Source: Paraphysomonas bandaiensis (taxonomy: Eukaryota; Protista; Chrysophyceae). From it: a DNA stretch of 64,000 nt. Positions 44,066 to 56,909 of this stretch are shown here, piece after piece (the stretch's first letter is position 1; each line of letters opens with the position of its first letter). The position numbers and the translations under genes are program-made. A model generated the notes under the pieces. The model was not told the origin of the DNA and ran no database searches. It saw nothing but the letters and a program-made list of their open reading frames with translations. The DNA lies in the NCBI GenBank assembly GCA_965644295.1, contig CBFFRP010000281.1:124001-188000 (forward strand), in the 5' to 3' direction.

Positions 44066-46248
44066 ATCGTATGTGTGTGTATGAGATCCGCTCCCTTGCT
44101 CTGACCATGTATTGTGATGTGTGGCTGGGTGACTTCCACAACTGACATGTATTTGTCTTGATTTTTTGAGACGAATTTTGTGATGCAATTTTGACACATG
44201 ACACAAATTTGTTTAATTGTCAAAATTGTCTACATAAATTTGCGACGCATATTGTGACGGACTTTGTAACACGATACAAAAAAAAATACGACAATTGTGG
44301 AAGTAATTCATTGAAATGTTTAATTAAGTTATGTTGGATATGAAGAGTAAAGTGCGTAGTAAAGTTTACTCACTTTCACTCTATCTGACAAATAATATCG
44401 TAGCATTGTGAAATAAGGGCCTGTGATTTGCTAAGAAAATCGTAGTACGAAATATGAAAGATGCAGTACAAAGCATGTTTCGCTGTCGTACGATCGTAGT
44501 GTGATAAGTTCCGTCGTATTTTTTTTTGTGTCGTGTCACAAAGTCCGTCACAAAAAAACGACACAAAAGTTGTGGCAGTCATCAACACGTGCACGGGACG
44601 AAGTGAGCTACAGCAAACGGGAGTGGTGGTATATCCGTGATGTACATGTGCACCCCGTATATAGAAACCAGTGCGTGTCCAATGAGAATAGCGGGCTGAC
44701 TGTTTGATAGGTGGAGGTGGTAGGAGAATATGTTGCGATACGGTATCTGCCTTAAAGGTAGTAAAACAGCTGGCGTCACTGAAAGAAGCGCAGGCGCGTG
44801 AGAAGACTGAAACAGTTAGAGTAAAGTGGCATCTGAAGGCCAGTAAGGGGGTAGTGTAGTGTGTACAACATGAGCTAAAGAGGTTTTCATCTGAGTGGTG
44901 ATGGAGTGCAAACATATAGACTGAGTTCGGGGGAGAGGAGCCAAATTGAGGCAGGACCCGCCATTGTGATGCTACCATGCCATGTAGCGTGGTGCTGGGC
45001 TATATTTCAGATCAGAGAATAGAGAATTAGTTCTATATATAGCATATATCGAGATATATTATTCAACCTAGTCAATTCTTAGTCATACTATTGTCGGTGT
45101 AAAAACCTAGTCAAAGCAACAAATGATTCAACCTAGCCAATTATAGTATTAAATCTAGTCATGAATTATTGTACTCGCATATAGCTACGCGTTACAGAAG
45201 CATGAGGTCATAGCAGGTGAAAGAATTTGAATGGACTTGGTGTCTATAAAGGTAGAAAAAAACATAAGTGAGTTATGTTTTCTTCCCTATAACTAATACA
45301 GCATATTATGCGTTGCTTGTTTTTGTGTGTTTTGGTATGTGCATATATATAGGGGTGAAGGGTGCACCATATTGACAGCGTAACTAATCACCAAGTTTGA
45401 TTATCTAGTGAGTGGTGCACCTCTACCTCTGTACACATTGCTTATTTCAGCGCTTTCCTACTCGGGTTCTCACTGCATATTCTATTGTTACTTCCAACAG
45501 CGTTCATAATAGCAGCACCCAGCGCATTTCATTCAGGGTTTGGGTCACGTGCTTATTAGGATTTTGTGCATTATATCATTCGACTCAGTTGCACTAGCAG
45601 AGTTAAAGCGTGACGTACATAAATATGATGATGATAACGATGCCAACGACAATAAGAAGCCTCGCGCAATTACAATTTAATACATTCATCATCACAATAT
45701 GTCATTTATGTGCGAGATTAGATATATTGAAAGTCTTATTAATAGCAATAGGCGTTAAAATCTGCACCAACTAGGTAGCTAGTGAATAGATAACTCACAG
45801 TTGCTATACCCTCCTCGGAATTTTTATGTGGTCAGGACACAGTAGCTGTAGCTATTCACTCATATTCAAATTCATGTTATCTCAACTACCAATCATTTTA
45901 ATACGATCATATATAGGCACAATCGTAAACAGCCAATTTCAGTTTTCACTACTACTATTCATCTCTAGTTAACATTTAATGTAATACTGTAATTCTTCAA
46001 GAAGCGGTTGTAAAGCAGAAGCTTGAGCCGCTGCTGTTTATAACAAGATAAAATCATATAACTTATAGTCGTTTCCCAAAACAAGACATCTAATACCAAA
46101 GAGAAAAACATATAAAGCGAGGAATATAAAACGATATATCATATCATACGAGAAAAATAGTGATTCCAGAATACAAAAAAAAATCGTATAAATGGTACAA
46201 ACATAAAATATTAGGAATCATCAGCAATATCCCAAGAGTATAGAGAGT

Positions 46249-47310: not shown

Positions 47311-49356
47311 ATCGTATGTGTGTGTATGAGATCCGCTCCCCTGCTCTGACCATGTAGATATGAAGTGAAGTTGTATGTTAGATATGAAGAGTTTGGTGTG
47401 TGGATATGAATGCCCCATTCCACATATTCTGACAAATAATATCATAGCATTGTGAAATAAGGGTCTGTGATTTGCTGATAATATCGTAGTAGGATATACG
47501 AAAGTTGCAGTACAAGGCATGTTATTCTCAATGTACATATGCTCTATACATACATGTATATGGAACAGATGTACCAATATATACGTACCATATGTACCAT
47601 ATGTACGATCGTAGTGTGATGAGTAGTACTGTAGTTTGATGTGTCCATGTACATGTAGTACTGTACATGTATATACGTGTACAAGTGCATGGGACGAAGT
47701 GGAGTATACCTATAGCTAACGGGAGTGGCGGTATGTCCGTAATGTACATATTCACCCCGTATATAGCAACCAGTGCATGTCCAATGAGAATAGCGGGCTG
47801 ACTGTTTGATAGGTGGAGGTGGTAGGAGAATATGTTGCGATACGGTATCTGCCTTAAAGGTAGTAAAACATCTGGCGTCACTGAAAGAAGCGCAGGCGCG
47901 TGAGAAGACTGAAACTGTTAGAGTAAAGTGGCATCTGAAGGCCAGTAAGGGGGTAGTGTAGTGTGTACAACATGAGCTAAAGAGGTTTTCATCTGAGTGG
48001 TGATGGAGTGCAAACATATAGACTGAGTCCGGGGGAGAGGAGCCAAATTGAGGCAGGACCCGCCATTGTGATGCTACCATGCCATGTAGCGTGGTGCTGG
48101 GCTATATTTCAGATCAGAGAATAGAGAATTAGTTCTATATATAGCATATATCGAGATATATTATTCAACCTAGTCAATTCTTAGTCATACTATTGTCGGT
48201 GTAAAAACCTAGTCAAAGCAACAAATGACTCAACCTAGCCAGTTATAGTATTTAACCTAGTCATGAATTATTGTACTCGCATATAGCTACGCGTTACAGA
48301 AGCATGAGGTCATAGCAGGTGAAAGAATTTGAATGGGCTTGGTGTCTATAAAGTAGAAAAAAACATAAGTGAGTTATGTTTCCTTCCCTATAACTAATAC
48401 AGCATATTATGCGTTGCTTGTTTTTGTGTGTTTTGGTATGTGCATATATATAGGGGTGAAGGGTGCACCATATTGACAGCGTAACTAATCACCAAGTTTG
48501 ATTATCTAGTGAGTGGTGCACCTCTACCTCTGTACACATTGCTTATTTCAGCGCTTTCCTACTCGGGTTCTCACTGCATATTCTATTGTTACTTCCAACA
48601 GCGTTCATAATAGCAGCACCCAGCGCATTTCATTCAGGGTTTGGGTCACGTGCTTATTAGGATTTTGTGCATTATATCATTCGACTCAGTTGCACTAGCA
48701 GAGTTAAAGCGTGACGTACATAAATATGATGATGATAACGATGCCAACGACAATAAGAAGCCTCGCGCAATTACAATTTAATACAATATGTCATTTATGT
48801 GCGAGATTATATATATTGAAAGTCTTATTAATAGCAATAGGCGTTAAAATCTGCACCAACTTAGTAGCTAGTGAATAGATATCTCGCAGTTGCTATACCC
48901 TCCTCGTAATTCTTATGTGGTCAGGACACAGTAGCTGTAGTTATTCACTCATATTCAAATTCATGTTATCTCAACTACCAATCATTTTAATACGATCATA
49001 TATAGGCACAATCGTAAACAGCCAATTTCAGTTTTCACTACTACTATTCATCTCTAGTTAACATTAAATGTAATACTGTTAAGAACTACTCCATTCTTCA
49101 AAAAGCGGTTGTAAAGCAGAAGCTTGAGCCGCTGCTGTTTATAACAAGATAAAATCATATAACTTATAGTTGTTTCCCAAAACAAGACATCTAATACCAA
49201 AGAGAAACACATATAAAACGAGGAATATAAAACGATATATCATATCATACGAGAAAAATAGCGATTCTAAAATACAAAAACAATCGTATAAATGGTACAA
49301 ACATAACTTGATAATATATTAAGAATCATCAGCAATATCCCAAGAGTATAGAGAGT

Positions 49357-50418: not shown

Positions 50419-53002
50419 ATCGTATGTGTGTGTATGAGATCCGCTCCCCTGCTCTGACCATGTAGATATGAAGTGAAGTTGTATGTTAGATATGAAGAGT
50501 TTGGTGTGTGGATATGAATGCCCCATTCCACATATTCTGACAAATAATATCATAGCATTGTGAAATAAGGGTCTGTGATTTGCTAATAAAATCAAGTACG
50601 ATATATGGAAAGTTGCAGTACAATGCATGTTCAGCCGTAGTACGATTGAGTGTAGGGCCCGCACCGCAGGCAGATCTCGCACCCTTGATTTTACACAATA
50701 GCCGCACAGTTGGTGCGCCCATAGTGTGATCCAATTGATTGGTGTGATTGTAGGATGATAGGCTGTGCACATACATATCATCACAGTACCGCGCCTAACA
50801 TGCATCGAGTATATATATATATATGGCGAGATAGCCATATGCAGCACATAAACATTAATGAATGCTTGAATGCTTGGTAATAACAACATGTTCCTATCAT
50901 CTTATTTCATGAACTGTGAGATGAGATATGCAGTTTGTAGACAAAGTTTACTATAAATAAGGCTGTATATATAGTAATGGTAAGGGGCTGTATATTATGG
51001 TATGGTATGGTATGATATGATATGGATAGGGTGGTGTACAGTGTATGATATTGTGGGATGATGTATACATGATTTATACTATATAGTAAAGAAGATGCTG
51101 CACGATGTGGTGGATTAATATTATTATATATCACTGTTGGTCCTCAGTTTGTCTAGATTCATCCAATTGCTTCTTTTATTTTTCGTATGATAGGCTAAAT
51201 ACCTAAAATGCAGGAATGTCATACACTGGAGCGATATTTATGACGGACAGGCATACGCAGTAAAACACACATGAATGCCAGGTAAATGCATGCTCCCCTC
51301 ATCTTATTTACAGTGTCAGATATGCAGGCGGATGACCAGTGATACAGGTGAAGGAATAGAAGGCTTTATATCATGATATGATATGGATTGGATGGTATAA
51401 ACTATGATGAATGTACTACGTTGTGTGATAGTATATGATTTGATTGTACATGATATGAGATGCTGAATGGTGTAATGTTTATACTTACCGGTGCAAGAGG
51501 GATGCCTAAGCGGCACAAGCGCCCGGTTGCCCCTGTTCTTTCTTACAGTAGTGAAGAGGTACCATGTTATGTAATGATATTCAGTATGGCTGTATGTGAT
51601 AAATTTTTAAACGATGTGTCATATAATATAATATTGTGTAATGCTAAGCCGTACGAAAGAAATGGCTGTGTGATATGACTGTATATGATAAAATGCTGAA
51701 CGCTGTGGCGGTTTATTATGTTGTTGTATGCTCTGTTAATAATGGTACGATGTATTACAAGTGCTAAGAAATCATTAATTATAAGAGTACAGTATAAAAG
51801 TTGATGGAGTGATTATAAATGAATACATATAGGCATTTTACAGATTTCTAACACCAGACTGAACTTTTCTTTTCTTTGACCTAGGAATAATGTTACCATC
51901 GCTGTCCCTTCCTGCACTCATTGCATCATATATACTGTTAATGTATTTCTTAGAGGCTTTCTTTTTTGGGTGAAACTTTTCGTTATTTTCCTGACCAAAT
52001 AAATCAACAATAACACGCATTTCAACCTCTTCAGCTAGGCATTTTAAATTAGCCTTCCATTCTCTGTCTGTAGGAAGTAGACTGACTTGCCATACAGGGT
52101 TTTGGCTCAGCAAGAAACCCTCCTTCGTAATACCACATGCTCACTTATCATCAGCACTTATATAGTTAGGCACCGTGGTGCGGGCTTCAGGGTACGGTAC
52201 CTTCCACATTTTACAGAAAGTGTGAAGGGGATGTTCGAGTGGAGTGGGGAGGAGGGTAGTGAGGTGGAGTATACCTATAGTACAGCAACGGGGGTGATGA
52301 TACGTCCGTAATATGCGTATACACCCCATATAGAAAAACCAGTGCGTGCCCAATGAAAATGGTGGGCTGGCTGCTTAATAGATGGTGGGCCGGTGGAGTT
52401 GAGAGTGTTTGAGCTGATATGCATAGAAAAGTCCGTTGATTAGGGTTAACGTTGATATAGGGCTCGTGTGGATGCTATTTACTGGAGCATTTTTAGGACT
52501 TGAGGGGATTGGTAGGAAAGAGTAGTGATTGGAGTCCAGGGTCTGAGATAGTACATACCTTCTTCGAATAAGGTGGTAGGAGAGTATGTAGTGATTGATA
52601 ATGGGGAAATGAGATGCGGTATCTATCTAAGAGGCTAAGAGATAAGGTAAAAGAGATGGCGTCACTGCAGAACGGCAGGCACGTAATAAAGCTGAAACAG
52701 TTAGAGTAAATTGGCATCTTAAGGCAGGTAATGGGAATGTAGTGTGTACAACATGAGCTAAAGAGGTTTTCATCTTAGTGTGGATGGAGTACAAACAGAG
52801 ACTGTGTCCGGGGGAAAGGAGACAACCATGGAAACAACAGAGCCATGGAGCGGGGTGCTAGCAGAAAGGTGTAACTTTTTGGGTTATATTTCAGACCAGA
52901 GAACAGAGAATTAGTTCTATATATAGCATATATCAAGTACCAGTACATCGTTGATGGGATGTCATTGATGGTATTCCAGTTCCTGGCAATTGTAGTGACC
53001 AT

Positions 53003-53782
53003 CAGGGATAGGGAACAATATATTGCAATATATTGTAAAATATATTGATTGGTGGACTGGTCAAATATTCCATCAATAGTGTTTCTGTTAAAAGAGCTCA
53101 CAATACTATTGCAATACATTGCAATCAATATTATGATAGTCATATTTGAGAAGAATCTTAACTGTAGGGTGCAAAATGGATATAAATAACCGAGAAATTG
53201 ATTACAACATTACAAAGGATAATGAAGCTGATGTTGACAATGCGACTAAAAATCTTCAGTCAGCTCAAAAAATTAAGAAACGTACAGATCCACGAGTCAT
53301 TAACGGTTGCCTGGCCCTGGTATGTACTTCCAATACATGGAAACGTCTGTTCAGCACAGCTAAACATATTATATCAGTGTTGCGCAAAAGTATCCATCCT
53401 ACTTAATATGCTGTTGTTTTAGAAAGCTATTCGGATACTAGCATATTTCAATTAATTCTGTGGATGAATATTGTGATGTTGACCTCACCGATGATGGCTC
53501 AGAGGATGAGGACGAGGTGGATTTTTAGTAGCTATAAGCAGCAGTTGGTTTGGTTGTCATGTGATCTTAATGACTAATACTAAAAATGAAATCTATGGAT
53601 GTGTTTACCTACTGAGTAGTCATACTAATATATTGCAATACATTGACAATATATTGCAATACATTGACAATATATTGCAATATATTGTAATTGTATTGTA
53701 GGACCGGTTTAAAAATTCCAACAATACTATTGATGGAACGCTATCTAACAATAGTATTGCAATATATTGTTCCCTATCCCTG
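53003..53782 (+). mobile_element. Non-autonomous hAT element A (780 bp) with a transposase C-terminal dimerization-domain remnant
   Basis: 28-bp TIR CAGGGATAGGGAACAATATATTGCAATA, ATATTGCAAT subterminal repeats, and TSNTWKRLFSTAKHIISVLRKSIHP resembling the hAT S-x-x-x-ER-x-FS motif. Confidence 0.88.
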
Positions 53783-54162
53783 CTCATCACTATGCATGAC
53801 TTTTATATATGCAATTCGCGCAGATTCTAGTAGGAGCATGTGTACCTTCCCATTATTACCTAACAAAGGTTACGCGGGGATTCTCGTGACCATTCATGAC
53901 TCAGTATAGGTCTAGTGTGACATGACCACCTCCCCCCTCCTCTAGAATGCGCGGGGTTTCTCGTAATCTCATATAGGCTATGCAGGTATAGTGTAGATCT
54001 AGCTAGAGCTTTCTTGATGACAACACACGAATAATACGCTGAGATTTTTATTAATAATCTATACGTTACTTAGCTTAGTCAACACTAACACTTCACTAGG
54101 GTACGCTCTCAGAATGGGGCAAAAATAAACTACTAAAACGAAACACATTACTAAAATAAATG

Positions 54163-55269
54163 CTATATCATACCCATTCTCAGAAGACTAGCCCTCAACT
54201 CTGTTATCTCCTTTTCCTTCTCAGCAAGTATGCTATCCTTCTCTGCCAGTTTGCTATCCTTCTCTGCCAGTTTGCTATCCTTCTCTGCCAGTTTGCTATC
54301 CTTCTCTGCAAGGGTGCTATGCAAACGTTCAATGGTTCGCTCCTGTTCCCGCTGTTTCTCCAATGCATCAAAAAATGACGTTATCTTACCAGCTATATAA
54401 CTATCAAACATAGAATAAGATGCTTGCATTTTCTCTTCTGTAATTGTTCCAGATAAATTCGGAAATATGGCACTGAATAGATATTCCACAACCACCTTGG
54501 AATTAAATGTGGCTTTGTGATTCATACGAAACATCAGTGGTTCAGCCAACTCAATATCAATGCCGGACATCAAATCAGCTCCTTTAGACTTCGCACATGC
54601 AAATATCCATGTGTATCCATCCGTGTAAGCCCCCCACACATCTTCAAATGAACCTTTCAATCGATTATTTTCCACACTCACACTAAGCTGTGCATAGAAC
54701 TGATATATTTCATTATTTTCATATGAATCAAATATTGATTCTGATGATATCAGCTTATGCTTCACTTCTATCACTGATGTGATTACACCATCTGGTTTCG
54801 ATGGTCTTTGATAAGACGTCACAAATTCCACAGGTCCGTTGGCAGTCTTCGACTCATTTGACAACTGCATTTCATGATGCACATATGCAGAAACATCTGC
54901 AATATCTACTTTGCCACCATCATAATCGTCATCATCGTCGAATCGTATTGAAATTGCGGCACCCTCAGATTTAACTTTATCAAAAGTTGCGACCAGCGAT
55001 AGCAATTCATACACTAGAAAGTACATTGTTTTCTCATTTCGTTTGACTACACAACTATCAAATCTAATCTCCAAAGGAATAAAGCGATTCATAAAATAAT
55101 CAAATGCGTTATTATCTAACTGTACACGCGGCGATAGCGATGGATGACATATCCGAACATGCGGAAATATGTTTGAAAATACAATCGAAGATCGAAATTG
55201 GGAGAAGCCACCACAGTGACCCTTTCCAGATTCTCTACTCCCAGAGGATTGGGTCTCAATATCATCCAT
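54163..55269 (-). CDS. PD-(D/E)xK restriction-endonuclease-fold protein with C-terminal heptad-repeat coiled coil
   Basis: Intact 368-aa ORF with motifs IAD...VIEVK...YQFYAQL...WGAYTDGYTWIF and an (LAEKDSK)n tail. Possible 43-nt 5'UTR intron at 55295-55337. Confidence 0.72.
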   Translation of the reverse strand: MDDIETQSSGSRESGKGHCGGFSQFRSSIVFSNIFPHVRICHPSLSPRVQLDNNAFDYFMNRFIPLEIRFDSCVVKRNEKTMYFLVYELLSLVATFDKVKSEGAAISIRFDDDDDYDGGKVDIADVSAYVHHEMQLSNESKTANGPVEFVTSYQRPSKPDGVITSVIEVKHKLISSESIFDSYENNEIYQFYAQLSVSVENNRLKGSFEDVWGAYTDGYTWIFACAKSKGADLMSGIDIELAEPLMFRMNHKATFNSKVVVEYLFSAIFPNLSGTITEEKMQASYSMFDSYIAGKITSFFDALEKQREQERTIERLHSTLAEKDSKLAEKDSKLAEKDSKLAEKDSILAEKEKEITELRASLLRMGMI

Positions 55270-56179
55270 ACTATTAAGTTGTTAGTTCTTATATCTGTCA
55301 AGAGAATGAACGACAGCATCAGAGACTACTGGCATACCCTGATGGCACCCAATAAAATGCCCATTTTAGACCCATGGAATATAATATCCCCATTTTCTAG
55401 ACCTCAAAAACCCGATTTAAAAAATTTCCGTAAAAAAGGGACACATCATTATTATGAGGATCATATACAGCAGTGTGTACCAGCCACCATAATACACACA
55501 CCATATCCACCTTTTCACAGTCATATTCTACAAAATGGCTTCATACAACATAATCACACTCGGTTACCAATAGAGCATGCTATTATGGATGATGCCCCAT
55601 ACTGACAGCGTAACTAATCACTGCATGCGGCCCTCTAGTGTGTGCGGCTGAGTGTTGCGACCGCACACCTCTACCTATGTACACATTGCTTAGTTCAGCG
55701 CTTCCCGACCCGGGTTCTCACTGAATATTCAACGCTAAATACCGTGTGATAATGATGTAGCTAGTTGGGTTCAGTAGCTAGCAAATAACAAGAGGATCCC
55801 AACTTGCTTCTTAGATTGTAATTGCTTTCCTATCAAATTCAGTGTTATGATGAGTGTGAGCCCCTTAGATTAACAAGGCACATATGAGAGATCAATTACT
55901 CTAAAAGATGTGATAATAACAAAGTTGAGATTGTGAAATTTATTGCCGGATACGTTGATAAACCGTCGAGAAGTGTGTATTGATTATTGCCCCATTCCGA
56001 GGGCGTGGCCATAGTGTAGGCTGGCTGGTGCTCCACCTAAAACACCGAGATATAGCACTGATTCTACTACCCACCCACCCGTGTACCAACGTAGCTGACC
56101 ACATAGATCACGTGCAGATTCTGTTGTTCCCCCCAACCTGTGTTAACCTTTGCTGAGATTACGCGGGATTTCTCATCAC

Positions 56180-56589
56180 CAGGGAGAGGGAACAATATAT
56201 TGCAATATATTGTAAAATATATTGATTGGTGGACTGGTCAAATATTCCATCAATAGTGTTTCTGTTAAAAGAGCTCATAATACTATTGCAATACATTGCA
56301 ATCAATATTATGATAGTCATATTTGAGAAGAGTCTTAACTGTAGGGTGCAAAATGGATATAAATAACCGAGAAATTGATTACATCATTACAAAGGATATG
56401 ACTAATACTAAAAATGAAATCTACGGATGTGTTTACCTACTGAGTAGTCATACTAATATATTGCAATACATTGACAATATATTGCAATATATTGTAATTG
56501 TATTGTAGGACCGGTTAAAAAAATCCATCAATAGTATTGATGGAACACTATCTAACAATAGTATTGCAATGTATTGTTCCCTATCCCTG
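56180..56589 (+). mobile_element. Non-autonomous hAT element B (410 bp), an internally deleted relative of A in the same orientation
   Basis: Same termini. Colinear with A except for a roughly 349-bp deletion, one missing 21-bp repeat and about 10 substitutions. Confidence 0.9.
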
Positions 56590-56909
56590 GTGACCATTAA
56601 TGGCCCATTAATGCAATTACCATAATCGGTTAACTCGCCCTGATCCCGGTGATATATAAATTAATGATTTCATTAATGATCTGTTTTCAACATGTTTAAA
56701 ACTTTCATTATTATGCAGAGGGCTGTATATTAGCGAAAGGGATTTTAGTAATGAGCTGTTTTCGACATGTTTAAAATTTACATTATTATGCGGAGGGCTA
56801 TAGGGAGGTCTAAGCAACCACATTGAGGAACAAACAATAATCTAACAAACAGAATAATACTCAATACAAAGAACAGCGGCCGCAAAGGAATTATATAAAT
56901 ATCATGAAT

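Follow-up and report, generated by a model that had tools for sequence, protein, structure and literature searches.

An inside-out LTR-like element between two hAT copies in Paraphysomonas bandaiensis: a probable hAT macrotransposon

We analysed a window of 64,000 nucleotides from Paraphysomonas bandaiensis and observed a 3.6-kb composite unit in which two hAT elements in direct orientation, hAT-A and hAT-B, bracket a cargo with an intact gene. We consider it probable (about 0.6) that this unit is a hAT macrotransposon, which would have come from a donor in which an LTR-like repeat, R, carrying the hAT was iterated.

From direct reading and alignment, the order of the parts was GTGACCAT, hAT-A, CTCATCAC, cargo, CTCATCAC, hAT-B, GTGACCAT (Table 1). 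Both hATs lack a private duplication, and a single 8-bp duplication of hAT type encloses the entire unit. The preliminary description of this DNA had proposed just such a composite with swapped 8-mers, and it was borne out to the base. The chance expectation is 1/65536 for the GTGACCAT pair and the same for the CTCATCAC pair. The termini of the two elements, CAGGGATAGGGAAC and GTTCCCTATCCCTG, form short Ac-type terminal inverted repeats (in hAT-B, the 5′ terminus has a single T>G substitution), and their targets conform to the consensus nTnnnnAn.

Table 1. Positions of the parts of the composite unit in the window
Feature	Positions	Strand	Remarks
Outer 8-bp target-site duplication GTGACCAT, left copy	52995..53002		T at 2, A at 7
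hAT-A, non-autonomous hAT, 780 bp, both termini intact, CAGGGATAGGGAAC...GTTCCCTATCCCTG	53003..53782	+
Inner 8-bp duplication CTCATCAC, left copy, belongs to repeat R	53783..53790
Repeat R (LTR-like), 3′ part, ends ...GAATGGGGCA	53791..54121	+
Internal region of the R-internal-R element	54122..55987		Colinear with C298, C461 and a Tara Oceans metagenome contig
Intact 368-aa ORF, restriction-endonuclease-like (PD-(D/E)xK) fold, C-terminal coiled coil	54163..55269	-
Repeat R, 5′ part, starts TGCCCCATTC	55988..56171	+
Inner duplication CTCATCAC, right copy	56172..56179
hAT-B, 410 bp, internally deleted sister of hAT-A, both termini present	56180..56589	+
Outer duplication GTGACCAT, right copy	56590..56597		Junction bridged in X1 and X3 read-derived contigs

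If the two 8-mers had flanked most copies of the family, they could have been taken for element sequence or a fixed target, as the preliminary description had pointed out. Instead, 28 of the 29 other family copies in the genome have perfect 8-bp duplications, all different, and the remaining copy matches at 7 of 8 positions; therefore, GTGACCAT and CTCATCAC are neither, and they are true target duplications. The target consensus of the family is nTnTAnAn (of 28 duplications, 24 have T at position 2 and 19 have A at position 7), and both 8-mers fit this pattern. Inside hAT-A, a relic ORF (53146-53406) had PF05699, the hAT dimerisation domain, in 73 of its 100 nearest language-model clusters, which is a lead only, and a Pfam search of this ORF gave no match. 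When the genome was searched with PF05699 no match was obtained, but the controls were equally silent, and an intact hAT transposase gene was not identified.

Two read-derived contigs, one of 1584 bp from run X1 and one of 14.8 kb from run X3, span the right outer junction (the end of hAT-B, GTGACCAT and the flank) with no mismatch. Among the read-derived contigs listed, none was seen across the left outer or the two inner junctions. The hAT and R families are both high-copy, and a misjoining of their repeats during assembly might produce a false composite of which the right outer junction alone is bridged. However, the same inner junctions are found at two independent loci, window-specific letters of the cargo occur at single-copy depth in run X1, and misjoins do not yield perfect reciprocal 8-mers; we regard such an artefact as extremely unlikely. 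The empty site for GTGACCAT, which had been suggested as a check, was searched for in the assembly and its pattern is absent.

The cargo runs up to 56171. Its ends are the two halves of one 523-bp repeat, R (TG...CA), which is uninterrupted at more than 20 other loci, and copies of R enclose an internal region of 1.87 kb. The cargo consists of the 3′ part of R, the internal region and the 5′ part of R, that is, it is a circular permutation of R plus internal region. We observed 19 solo copies of R, which start with TGCCCC and end with GGGGCA; 6 of the 19 are flanked by perfect 5-bp duplications and 5 more by duplications matching at four of five positions. A copy of the element on contig C298 has the arrangement R(part)-internal-R, is 99% identical to the cargo and has no hAT; it lies at the contig end and breaks off inside the element. 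In the hAT-free R of this copy CTCATCAC is single and uninterrupted, and older solo copies have CTCATAAC at that site. From the C298 and solo copies, R is a terminal direct repeat with TG...CA ends, solo repeats and 5-bp duplications, within the 4-6 bp typical of LTR retrotransposons. Comparison of these copies shows that the hAT inserted at the single site CTCATCAC of R, which occurs to either side of the internal region. A search for R copies bearing an excision footprint at CTCATCAC found none. A reading of the gene as enclosed by CACTA-type inverted repeats (54094-56016) was rejected on account of the 19 solo copies with their TGCCCC and GGGGCA ends; what looks like such repeats is the pair of R termini, inverted relative to each other and viewed inside-out.

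We call the parent of the cargo LTR-like only, because neither a primer-binding site (TGG/tRNA-type or self-priming) nor a polypurine tract was found next to R, and neither gag/pol nor an autonomous partner was found. No reverse transcriptase was found for R, there was no reverse transcriptase ORF in two other R-bounded intervals, and the cargo ORF is by Pfam not a reverse transcriptase, integrase or gag. Non-autonomous LTR elements of the LARD/TRIM type have TG...CA terminal direct repeats, 5-bp duplications and many solo repeats, and lack reverse transcriptase. The parent of the cargo resembles them in all these respects, but it differs in having no recognised primer-binding site or polypurine tract and in coding for a conserved protein of restriction-endonuclease fold, which is unusual in retroelements.

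Besides the C298 copy, the search for other copies of the cargo, as had been recommended, revealed a second composite on contig C461. It is partly decayed: its outer 3′ end is deleted, its inner junctions are identical to those of the window composite and its outer flank is different. One of its inner junctions reads ...CTTCAGT+ATGAG+TCATCAC, in which the first base of the duplication is changed from C to G with a 4-nt palindrome beside it, as in a hairpin-type hAT footprint. A tree of the three copies of the cargo is star-shaped. Paralogues of the ORF on C68 and C89 are older and decayed and have no flanking direct repeats. The junction patterns between the hAT and CTCATCAC occur at no third locus in the genome and in none of the metagenome contigs, and a search for a donor (R with hAT, with R on both outer sides) found none.

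We propose the following origin. A non-autonomous hAT inserted at CTCATCAC inside R, the step to which the copies described above testify. R with hAT would then have come to lie on both sides of the internal region, either by a round of retrotransposition, which copies DNA nested in one LTR into both, or by spread of the hAT from unit to adjacent unit within an (R-internal)n tandem array. Finally, the transposase would have treated as one transposon the stretch from the 5′ end of the upstream hAT to the 3′ end of the downstream one, and hAT-[R 3′ part-internal-R 5′ part]-hAT would have been excised and inserted at GTGACCAT. We infer this last step because the outer 8-bp duplication is perfect and the outer termini are intact; its outcome would be two hATs that lack private duplications and a cargo turned inside-out. 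The C461 composite may represent the same event repeated or the unit moved again, later altered by a transposase-type cut and repair at its inner end and by the deletion at its outer 3′ end.

Of the three models offered in the preliminary description, this one corresponds to composite excision from a tandem array, which fits best; the array may be no more than the LTR pair of a single element, or else adjacent units of an (LTR-internal)n series, as the cargo consists of the LTR 3′ part, the internal region and the LTR 5′ part. According to another of the three, the inner ends of hAT-A and hAT-B were excised by reversed-ends transposition, the segment between them was circularised and the ends were reinserted at CTCATCAC, thereby permuting the circle. 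This would give a second 8-bp duplication inside the macrotransposon, and the footprint in C461 indicates that inner ends can be cut. However, the cargo is colinear over its full length with the C298 element, an ordinary LTR-internal-LTR copy, and with the Tara contig. It shows no rejoined junction or footprint, so that no internal rejoining took place, and its permutation is fully accounted for by R as a terminal direct repeat. We have therefore rejected this model as highly improbable.

The kinship of the flanking hATs bears on the remaining models. Relative to hAT-A, hAT-B lacks 349 bp and 21 bp, and the two differ by 11 substitutions in the ∼425 bases that they share. The two have in common three derived substitutions and a 27-bp deletion which occur in 0/29 family copies, hAT-A differing from typical family copies by 6-8%. 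The two hATs of C461 have two other derived substitutions in common, and the changes shared within either pair are missing from the other composite as well as from the 29 family copies. In the tree, hAT-A groups with hAT-B (support 99/96) and the left with the right hAT of C461 (91/87); by these sequence comparisons the two hATs within each composite are each other's closest relatives. Such sister pairs are expected if each pair was copied from a single hAT, which fits macrotransposition from an iterated R-with-hAT donor and speaks against crossing over with a resident hAT of other descent. The divergence of hAT-A from hAT-B is ∼4 times that predicted by the branch of the window cargo (8 unique changes in 2389 bp), and either faster evolution of the hATs or a history blurred by conversion would explain the excess. 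The earlier argument from their differences against a simple duplication is valid only in part: the divergence exceeds the cargo's prediction, but hAT-A and hAT-B are nevertheless sister copies.

The third of the earlier models holds that a 2.39-kb circle (one-LTR, or an episomal R-internal form) gained a hAT at CTCATCAC and crossed over with a resident hAT at GTGACCAT, so that two chimeric hATs would surround the linearised circle. A single crossover would indeed give the duplication pattern X-A-Y...Y-B-X, the cargo is an exact circular permutation of R plus internal region, and a small multicopy circle could explain the ∼30 extra near-identical R-internal units in the reads. However, this model predicts 5′ parts of hAT-A and hAT-B from different elements, at odds with the derived changes that they share and that are missing from the 29 family copies. 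Moreover, the hATs of C461 independently show the same sister relationship, and neither a solo hAT at GTGACCAT nor a circle was found. Given the shared derived changes in both composites, we disfavour the model as quite unlikely.

The sisterhood could alternatively result if gene conversion acted on these direct repeats, which lie 3 kb from each other. On this basis one might suppose a single ancestral composite, which reached the second locus through macrotransposition or a segmental duplication, in which conversion later made the hATs sisters and whose donor was a multimeric circle or tandem array and not two LTRs. The identical inner junctions of the two composites and the star tree of the cargo copies favour this reading. 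The excess of C298-type sequence in the reads, together with a C298 contig that ends inside the element, fits a collapsed array, and the maize Wc macrotransposon is likewise in a tandem array (10.1101/082677). However, conversion would be required in both composites and neither an array nor a multimer was assembled; apart from the nature of the donor, its predictions in the present data are the same as those of macrotransposition from an iterated donor. We consider it rather unlikely.

The 368-aa ORF of the cargo is intact, as had been claimed, and its AF2 model, built on 26 sequences (pLDDT 86.5), is nuclease-like in fold. A restriction-endonuclease-like domain with the PD-(D/E)xK alpha-beta-beta-beta-alpha-beta core spans residues ∼20-275 of the model and is followed by a long C-terminal coiled coil, coded in part by 21-bp repeats (54215-54319). 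By VIA-align, the model matched the BpuSI nuclease domain (Z 11.4, 152 aa, rmsd 3.5), DrdV (Z 10.7, 138 aa, rmsd 2.6) and mitoribosomal chains of the mL37/mL65 type (Z 15), while Foldseek weakly matched MGME1, lambda exonuclease and Cas4. Across 26 homologues, conservation is 90% or higher at E79, E133, E148 (within PVEFV) and K170 (within E-V-K). No significant Pfam family match was obtained with the ORF and nine distant homologues, and in a search for homologous proteins most matches beyond the first three were to the AEKDS coiled-coil repeat only. By fold, the product is a predicted nuclease-like protein.

In bacterial IS-flanked composite transposons such as Tn10, two copies of an insertion element mobilise a cargo, with one duplication round the unit. 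The composite described here likewise has two copies of one element bracketing a cargo gene and a single outer duplication, but it differs in the hairpin cut-and-paste of hAT, in that both flanking elements are non-autonomous and in having no evident selectable cargo function. Its presentation as a novel eukaryotic analogue of a composite transposon was overstated, since macrotransposons of the Ac/Ds type and Tam3L have been described in maize, where pairs of hAT elements have been documented to macrotranspose and leave a matching 8-bp duplication (PMC3260210; 10.1101/082677). As with Ac/Ds, two direct hATs would have acted as one transposon through their outer ends and carried the intervening DNA, with one 8-bp duplication round all. 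In the maize system (Huang and Dooner 2008, as cited in PMC3260210 and 10.1101/082677), the cargo is mostly retrotransposons, up to 100 kb, and donor and target are known genetically; the present unit is known from its product alone, involves two MITE-size sister copies and a single permuted LTR-type cargo, and occurs in a marine protist. At maize White Cap (Wc), Tam3L, a natural and fixed hAT macrotransposon, moved the intact gene Ccd1; a matching 8-bp duplication at the two outer junctions confirmed it, and it is associated with tandem amplification (10.1101/082677). The present unit resembles it in its intact gene and its matching outer duplication, but in contrast to the host genes and tens of kb at Wc, the cargo here is a mobile-element unit, and the inner junctions have a second duplication in common because the hAT sat in the terminal repeat R.

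These results probably provide a clean natural case, outside plants, of paired hATs moving foreign DNA, by a process that is itself known from maize. They also suggest a simple origin for hAT pairs, as a MITE inserted into a terminal direct repeat is automatically there twice, at equivalent sites and pointing the same way, on either side of whatever the repeats enclose. In this way a MITE would turn an LTR-type element inside-out and give its gene to a DNA transposase. By its sequence, the window composite may still be mobile, as both outer termini and the ORF have been kept intact. Judged by read depth, ∼30 near-identical cargo units are missing from the assembly, and this ∼30-fold excess points to a tandem or extrachromosomal form. 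It is a speculative and, in our view, unlikely extension that the 2389-bp R plus internal unit persists as a small circle or long tandem array, for which the hAT MITE would be a second, DNA-level route into chromosomes. If a multimeric circle or array was indeed the source of the macrotransposition, the hAT transposase would be giving a ride to an LTR-like or episomal element.

Direct reading of the window agreed to the base with the layout that the preliminary description gave for the 3.6-kb unit, a cargo between two hAT elements with one 8-bp duplication around the whole and another around the cargo (see the table). hAT-A and hAT-B are direct repeats; hAT-B lacks 349 bp and 21 bp relative to hAT-A, and the two show 11 differences over ~425 common bases. 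The source assembly is eukaryotic (62.5 Mb, 669 contigs), nearby ORFs correspond to an RNA polymerase large subunit, a protein kinase and taxilin, and the runs containing the stretch are of marine origin. The left flank (52911-52997) is part of a dispersed repeat with ~30 matches and ends in ...CAATTGTAGTG, whose reverse complement, CACTACAATTG, is a CACTA-type terminus. The right flank (56593-56642) is the start of a different dispersed repeat with nine matches. As these two repeats are nowhere else adjacent, the hAT target GTG/ACCAT spans an older repeat boundary. Upstream of the composite, a ~300-bp segment has three local paralogous copies, ~85% identical (52640-52937, 44756-45050 and 47858-48152).

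Features of the composite and of the LTR-like repeat R (window positions)
Feature	Position	Basis
Outer 8-mer GTGACCAT, left copy	52995-53002	direct reading
hAT-A	53003-53782	direct reading
Inner 8-mer CTCATCAC, left copy	53783-53790	direct reading
Cargo	from hAT-A's inner 8-mer to 56171	direct reading
Inner 8-mer CTCATCAC, right copy	56172-56179	direct reading
hAT-B	56180-56589	direct reading
Outer 8-mer GTGACCAT, right copy	56590-56597	direct reading
R, 523 bp	55988-56179 joined to 53791-54121	

In a genome search, hAT-A had at least 40 near-full-length relatives at 89-94% identity among several hundred candidate matches. A perfect 8-bp duplication surrounded the element in 28 of the 29 copies fetched, all 28 being distinct, and in the remaining copy it agreed at 7 of 8 positions. 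T at position 2 (24/28) and A at position 7 (19/28) make up the hAT target pattern, to which both GTGACCAT and CTCATCAC conform. Since these 28 copies have their own, all-different duplications, neither 8-mer is an element end or a fixed target, and this concern of the preliminary description is removed. Many main-subfamily copies (loci L004, L007, L008, L010, L020 and others) are identical across the first 290 bp, which indicates that this MITE family expanded in a recent burst. The relic ORF of hAT-A (53146-53406) was not recognized by Pfam; its closest language-model neighbours were mostly hAT dimerisation-domain clusters, a lead only.

Searching the genome with a 2397-bp cargo query, we observed that the final ~190 bp of the cargo adjoin its initial ~335 bp, with an 8-bp overlap, at dozens of loci, which identifies the ends of the cargo as two halves of a single repeat, R. 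This repeat runs uninterrupted across a single target copy in more than 20 fetched loci. It starts with TGCCCCATTC and ends with GAATGGGGCA, and of 19 solo copies, six are flanked by perfect 5-bp duplications and another five by ones matching at 4 of 5 positions. In its termini and duplications R is thus built like an LTR that a retroviral-type integrase has inserted. A primer-binding site (tRNA-type or self-priming), a polypurine tract and an RT were looked for in R and its parent and none was found; R is accordingly termed LTR-like here, and its parent is not classed as an established retrotransposon.

Contig C298 has a hAT-free cargo copy. After its internal region, 99% identical to that of the cargo, comes a complete R with one CTCATCAC; before it lies the 3' portion of a further R, at which the contig terminates. 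This makes R-internal-R the parental arrangement, of which the cargo, R(3' part)-internal-R(5' part), is a circular permutation. The hAT target reads CTCATAAC in older solo copies of R; CTCATCAC at this target is confined to the young family (C298, the window and C461, the contig with a second composite), as expected if the duplication arose within that family. R has three internal repeats of ~26-30 bp (53867-53892, 53944-53969 and 56156-56181), one of which contains the hAT target. The outer 8-mer also occurs once within R, at 53886-53893, probably by chance. The internal region holds another dispersed repeat (55593-55790), very deep in the reads and often beside R copies elsewhere (contigs C128, C133 and C395).

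The proposed search for further cargo copies yielded the C298 copy and a second composite; within the genome, the composite junction patterns, with up to three mismatches allowed, were confined to the window and C461. The latter reads hAT-cargo-hAT, and its right inner junction, TACGCGGGATTT-CTCATCAC-CAGGGA..., is the same as the window's, whereas its outer left flank, CCGCATTG, is unlike it. Only the first ~285 bp of its left hAT are present, joined to the cargo as ...CTTCAGT+ATGAG+TCATCAC; here G replaces C as the first base of the duplication, and immediately before it stands ATGA, the reverse complement of TCAT. hAT chemistry involves a hairpin-type cut on flanking DNA, and this junction may represent the pattern expected from such a cut and its repair. 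The right hAT is truncated after hAT-A coordinate ~53429 and abuts unrelated DNA, so that this composite has lost its outer 3' end; the truncated element adjoins (locus L063, 6080-6500) the 3' end of a minus-strand ORF, SPFH/stomatin-type by eye.

The three cargo copies diverge by 1.0-1.4%, all keep the 368-aa ORF, and form a star tree with 7, 10 and 8 private changes when rooted with a Tara Oceans metagenome contig. All four flanking hATs have subfamily markers in common with loci L002, L003 and L021. Within this group, hAT-A and hAT-B share three derived substitutions (53146, 53147 and 53159) and a 27-bp subterminal deletion, and the C461 pair shares two other derived substitutions; a maximum-likelihood tree of the 5' 290 bp supported (A,B) at 99/96 and (C461L,C461R) at 91/87. 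Crossover of a circle with a resident hAT copy, as suggested earlier, predicts chimeric, non-sister hATs and is disfavoured by the sisters found in both composites. Reversed-ends transposition, also suggested, predicts that the cargo should contain a rejoined junction, and it has none. Sisterhood could be mimicked by gene conversion between hAT-A and hAT-B, so that either one or two macrotransposition events may have occurred. The divergence of hAT-A from hAT-B is ~4 times that predicted from the window cargo's private branch, and the distance from hAT-A to the C461 hATs is inflated to the same degree; hence the hATs seem to change faster than the cargo.

In the simplest account, a single hAT would have inserted at CTCATCAC within R, R-with-hAT would have come to flank the internal region on either side, and the outer hAT ends would then have acted as one transposon, producing the perfect GTGACCAT duplication. 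The second step would be automatic if R were a terminal direct repeat regenerated from one template in each replication cycle, or if sequence passed between neighbouring array units; either would make the two hATs of each composite sisters. The layout, both duplications, the permuted cargo, the second composite and the sister relationship of the hATs are shown by the sequences; this order of events, the role of the transposase and the nature of the donor are what we infer.

Read evidence came from assembled contigs of public runs over a 5001-base stretch. Run X1 carries both flanks exactly as in the window (depth 27-34), and in it a 1584-bp contig bridges the hAT-B end into the right flank, a junction also bridged in X3, which has a different organism label. 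The summed depth of the cargo-internal region (54300-55470) was ~40 times that of the single-copy flank in X1 and ~15 times in X3. At copy-distinguishing sites in X1 the abundant letters are those of C298, and window-private letters stand at single-copy depth. This excess points to ~30 near-identical R-internal units absent from the assembly. Either a tandem array collapsed where contig C298 ends or a small circle present in many copies would fit. In X9 and X14, where the window flanks are absent, the ratio of internal region to intact-R junction is ~1:2, the value for a single ordinary element.

For the 368-aa ORF, a profile search against 1.8 billion representatives yielded 47 matches, ~20 spanning the N-terminal domain; E79, E133, E148 (PVEFV), K170 (E-V-K), N202 and G213 are nearly invariant in a 26-sequence alignment. 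The ORF's AF2 model (pLDDT 86.5) matches type IIG/IIL nuclease domains (BpuSI, Z 11.4; DrdV, Z 10.7), mitoribosomal mL37/mL65-type chains (Z 15) and several smaller restriction-endonuclease-like proteins, and Foldseek returned MGME1, lambda exonuclease and Cas4, all weakly. The model supports a predicted nuclease-like fold with a plausible E...ExK site and a coiled coil; of the intact nuclease gene described earlier, the reading frame and modelled fold hold, and the activity is putative. The 21-bp tandem repeats at 54215-54319 encode AEKDSKL heptads of the coiled coil; their letters vary among the three genomic copies, and a Tara homologue has fewer units.

Paired-hAT macrotransposition is established for Ac/Ds, carrying up to 100 kb of nested retrotransposons, according to a passage in PMC3260210 citing Huang and Dooner 2008, and the natural macrotransposon Tam3L moved Ccd1 at the maize Wc locus, as a matching 8-bp duplication confirms (10.1101/082677). 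In a full-text literature search, the term macrotransposon returned only maize and rice work and a review of fish Teratorn. The window composite resembles Ac/Ds and Tam3L in its paired hAT elements and in the single outer duplication; given these precedents, it is a further case of a known process. What is instructive is that the hAT pair was probably born by nesting in a terminal repeat, that a mobile element with its gene intact is carried inside-out as the cargo, and that the second copy carries a transposase-type scar.
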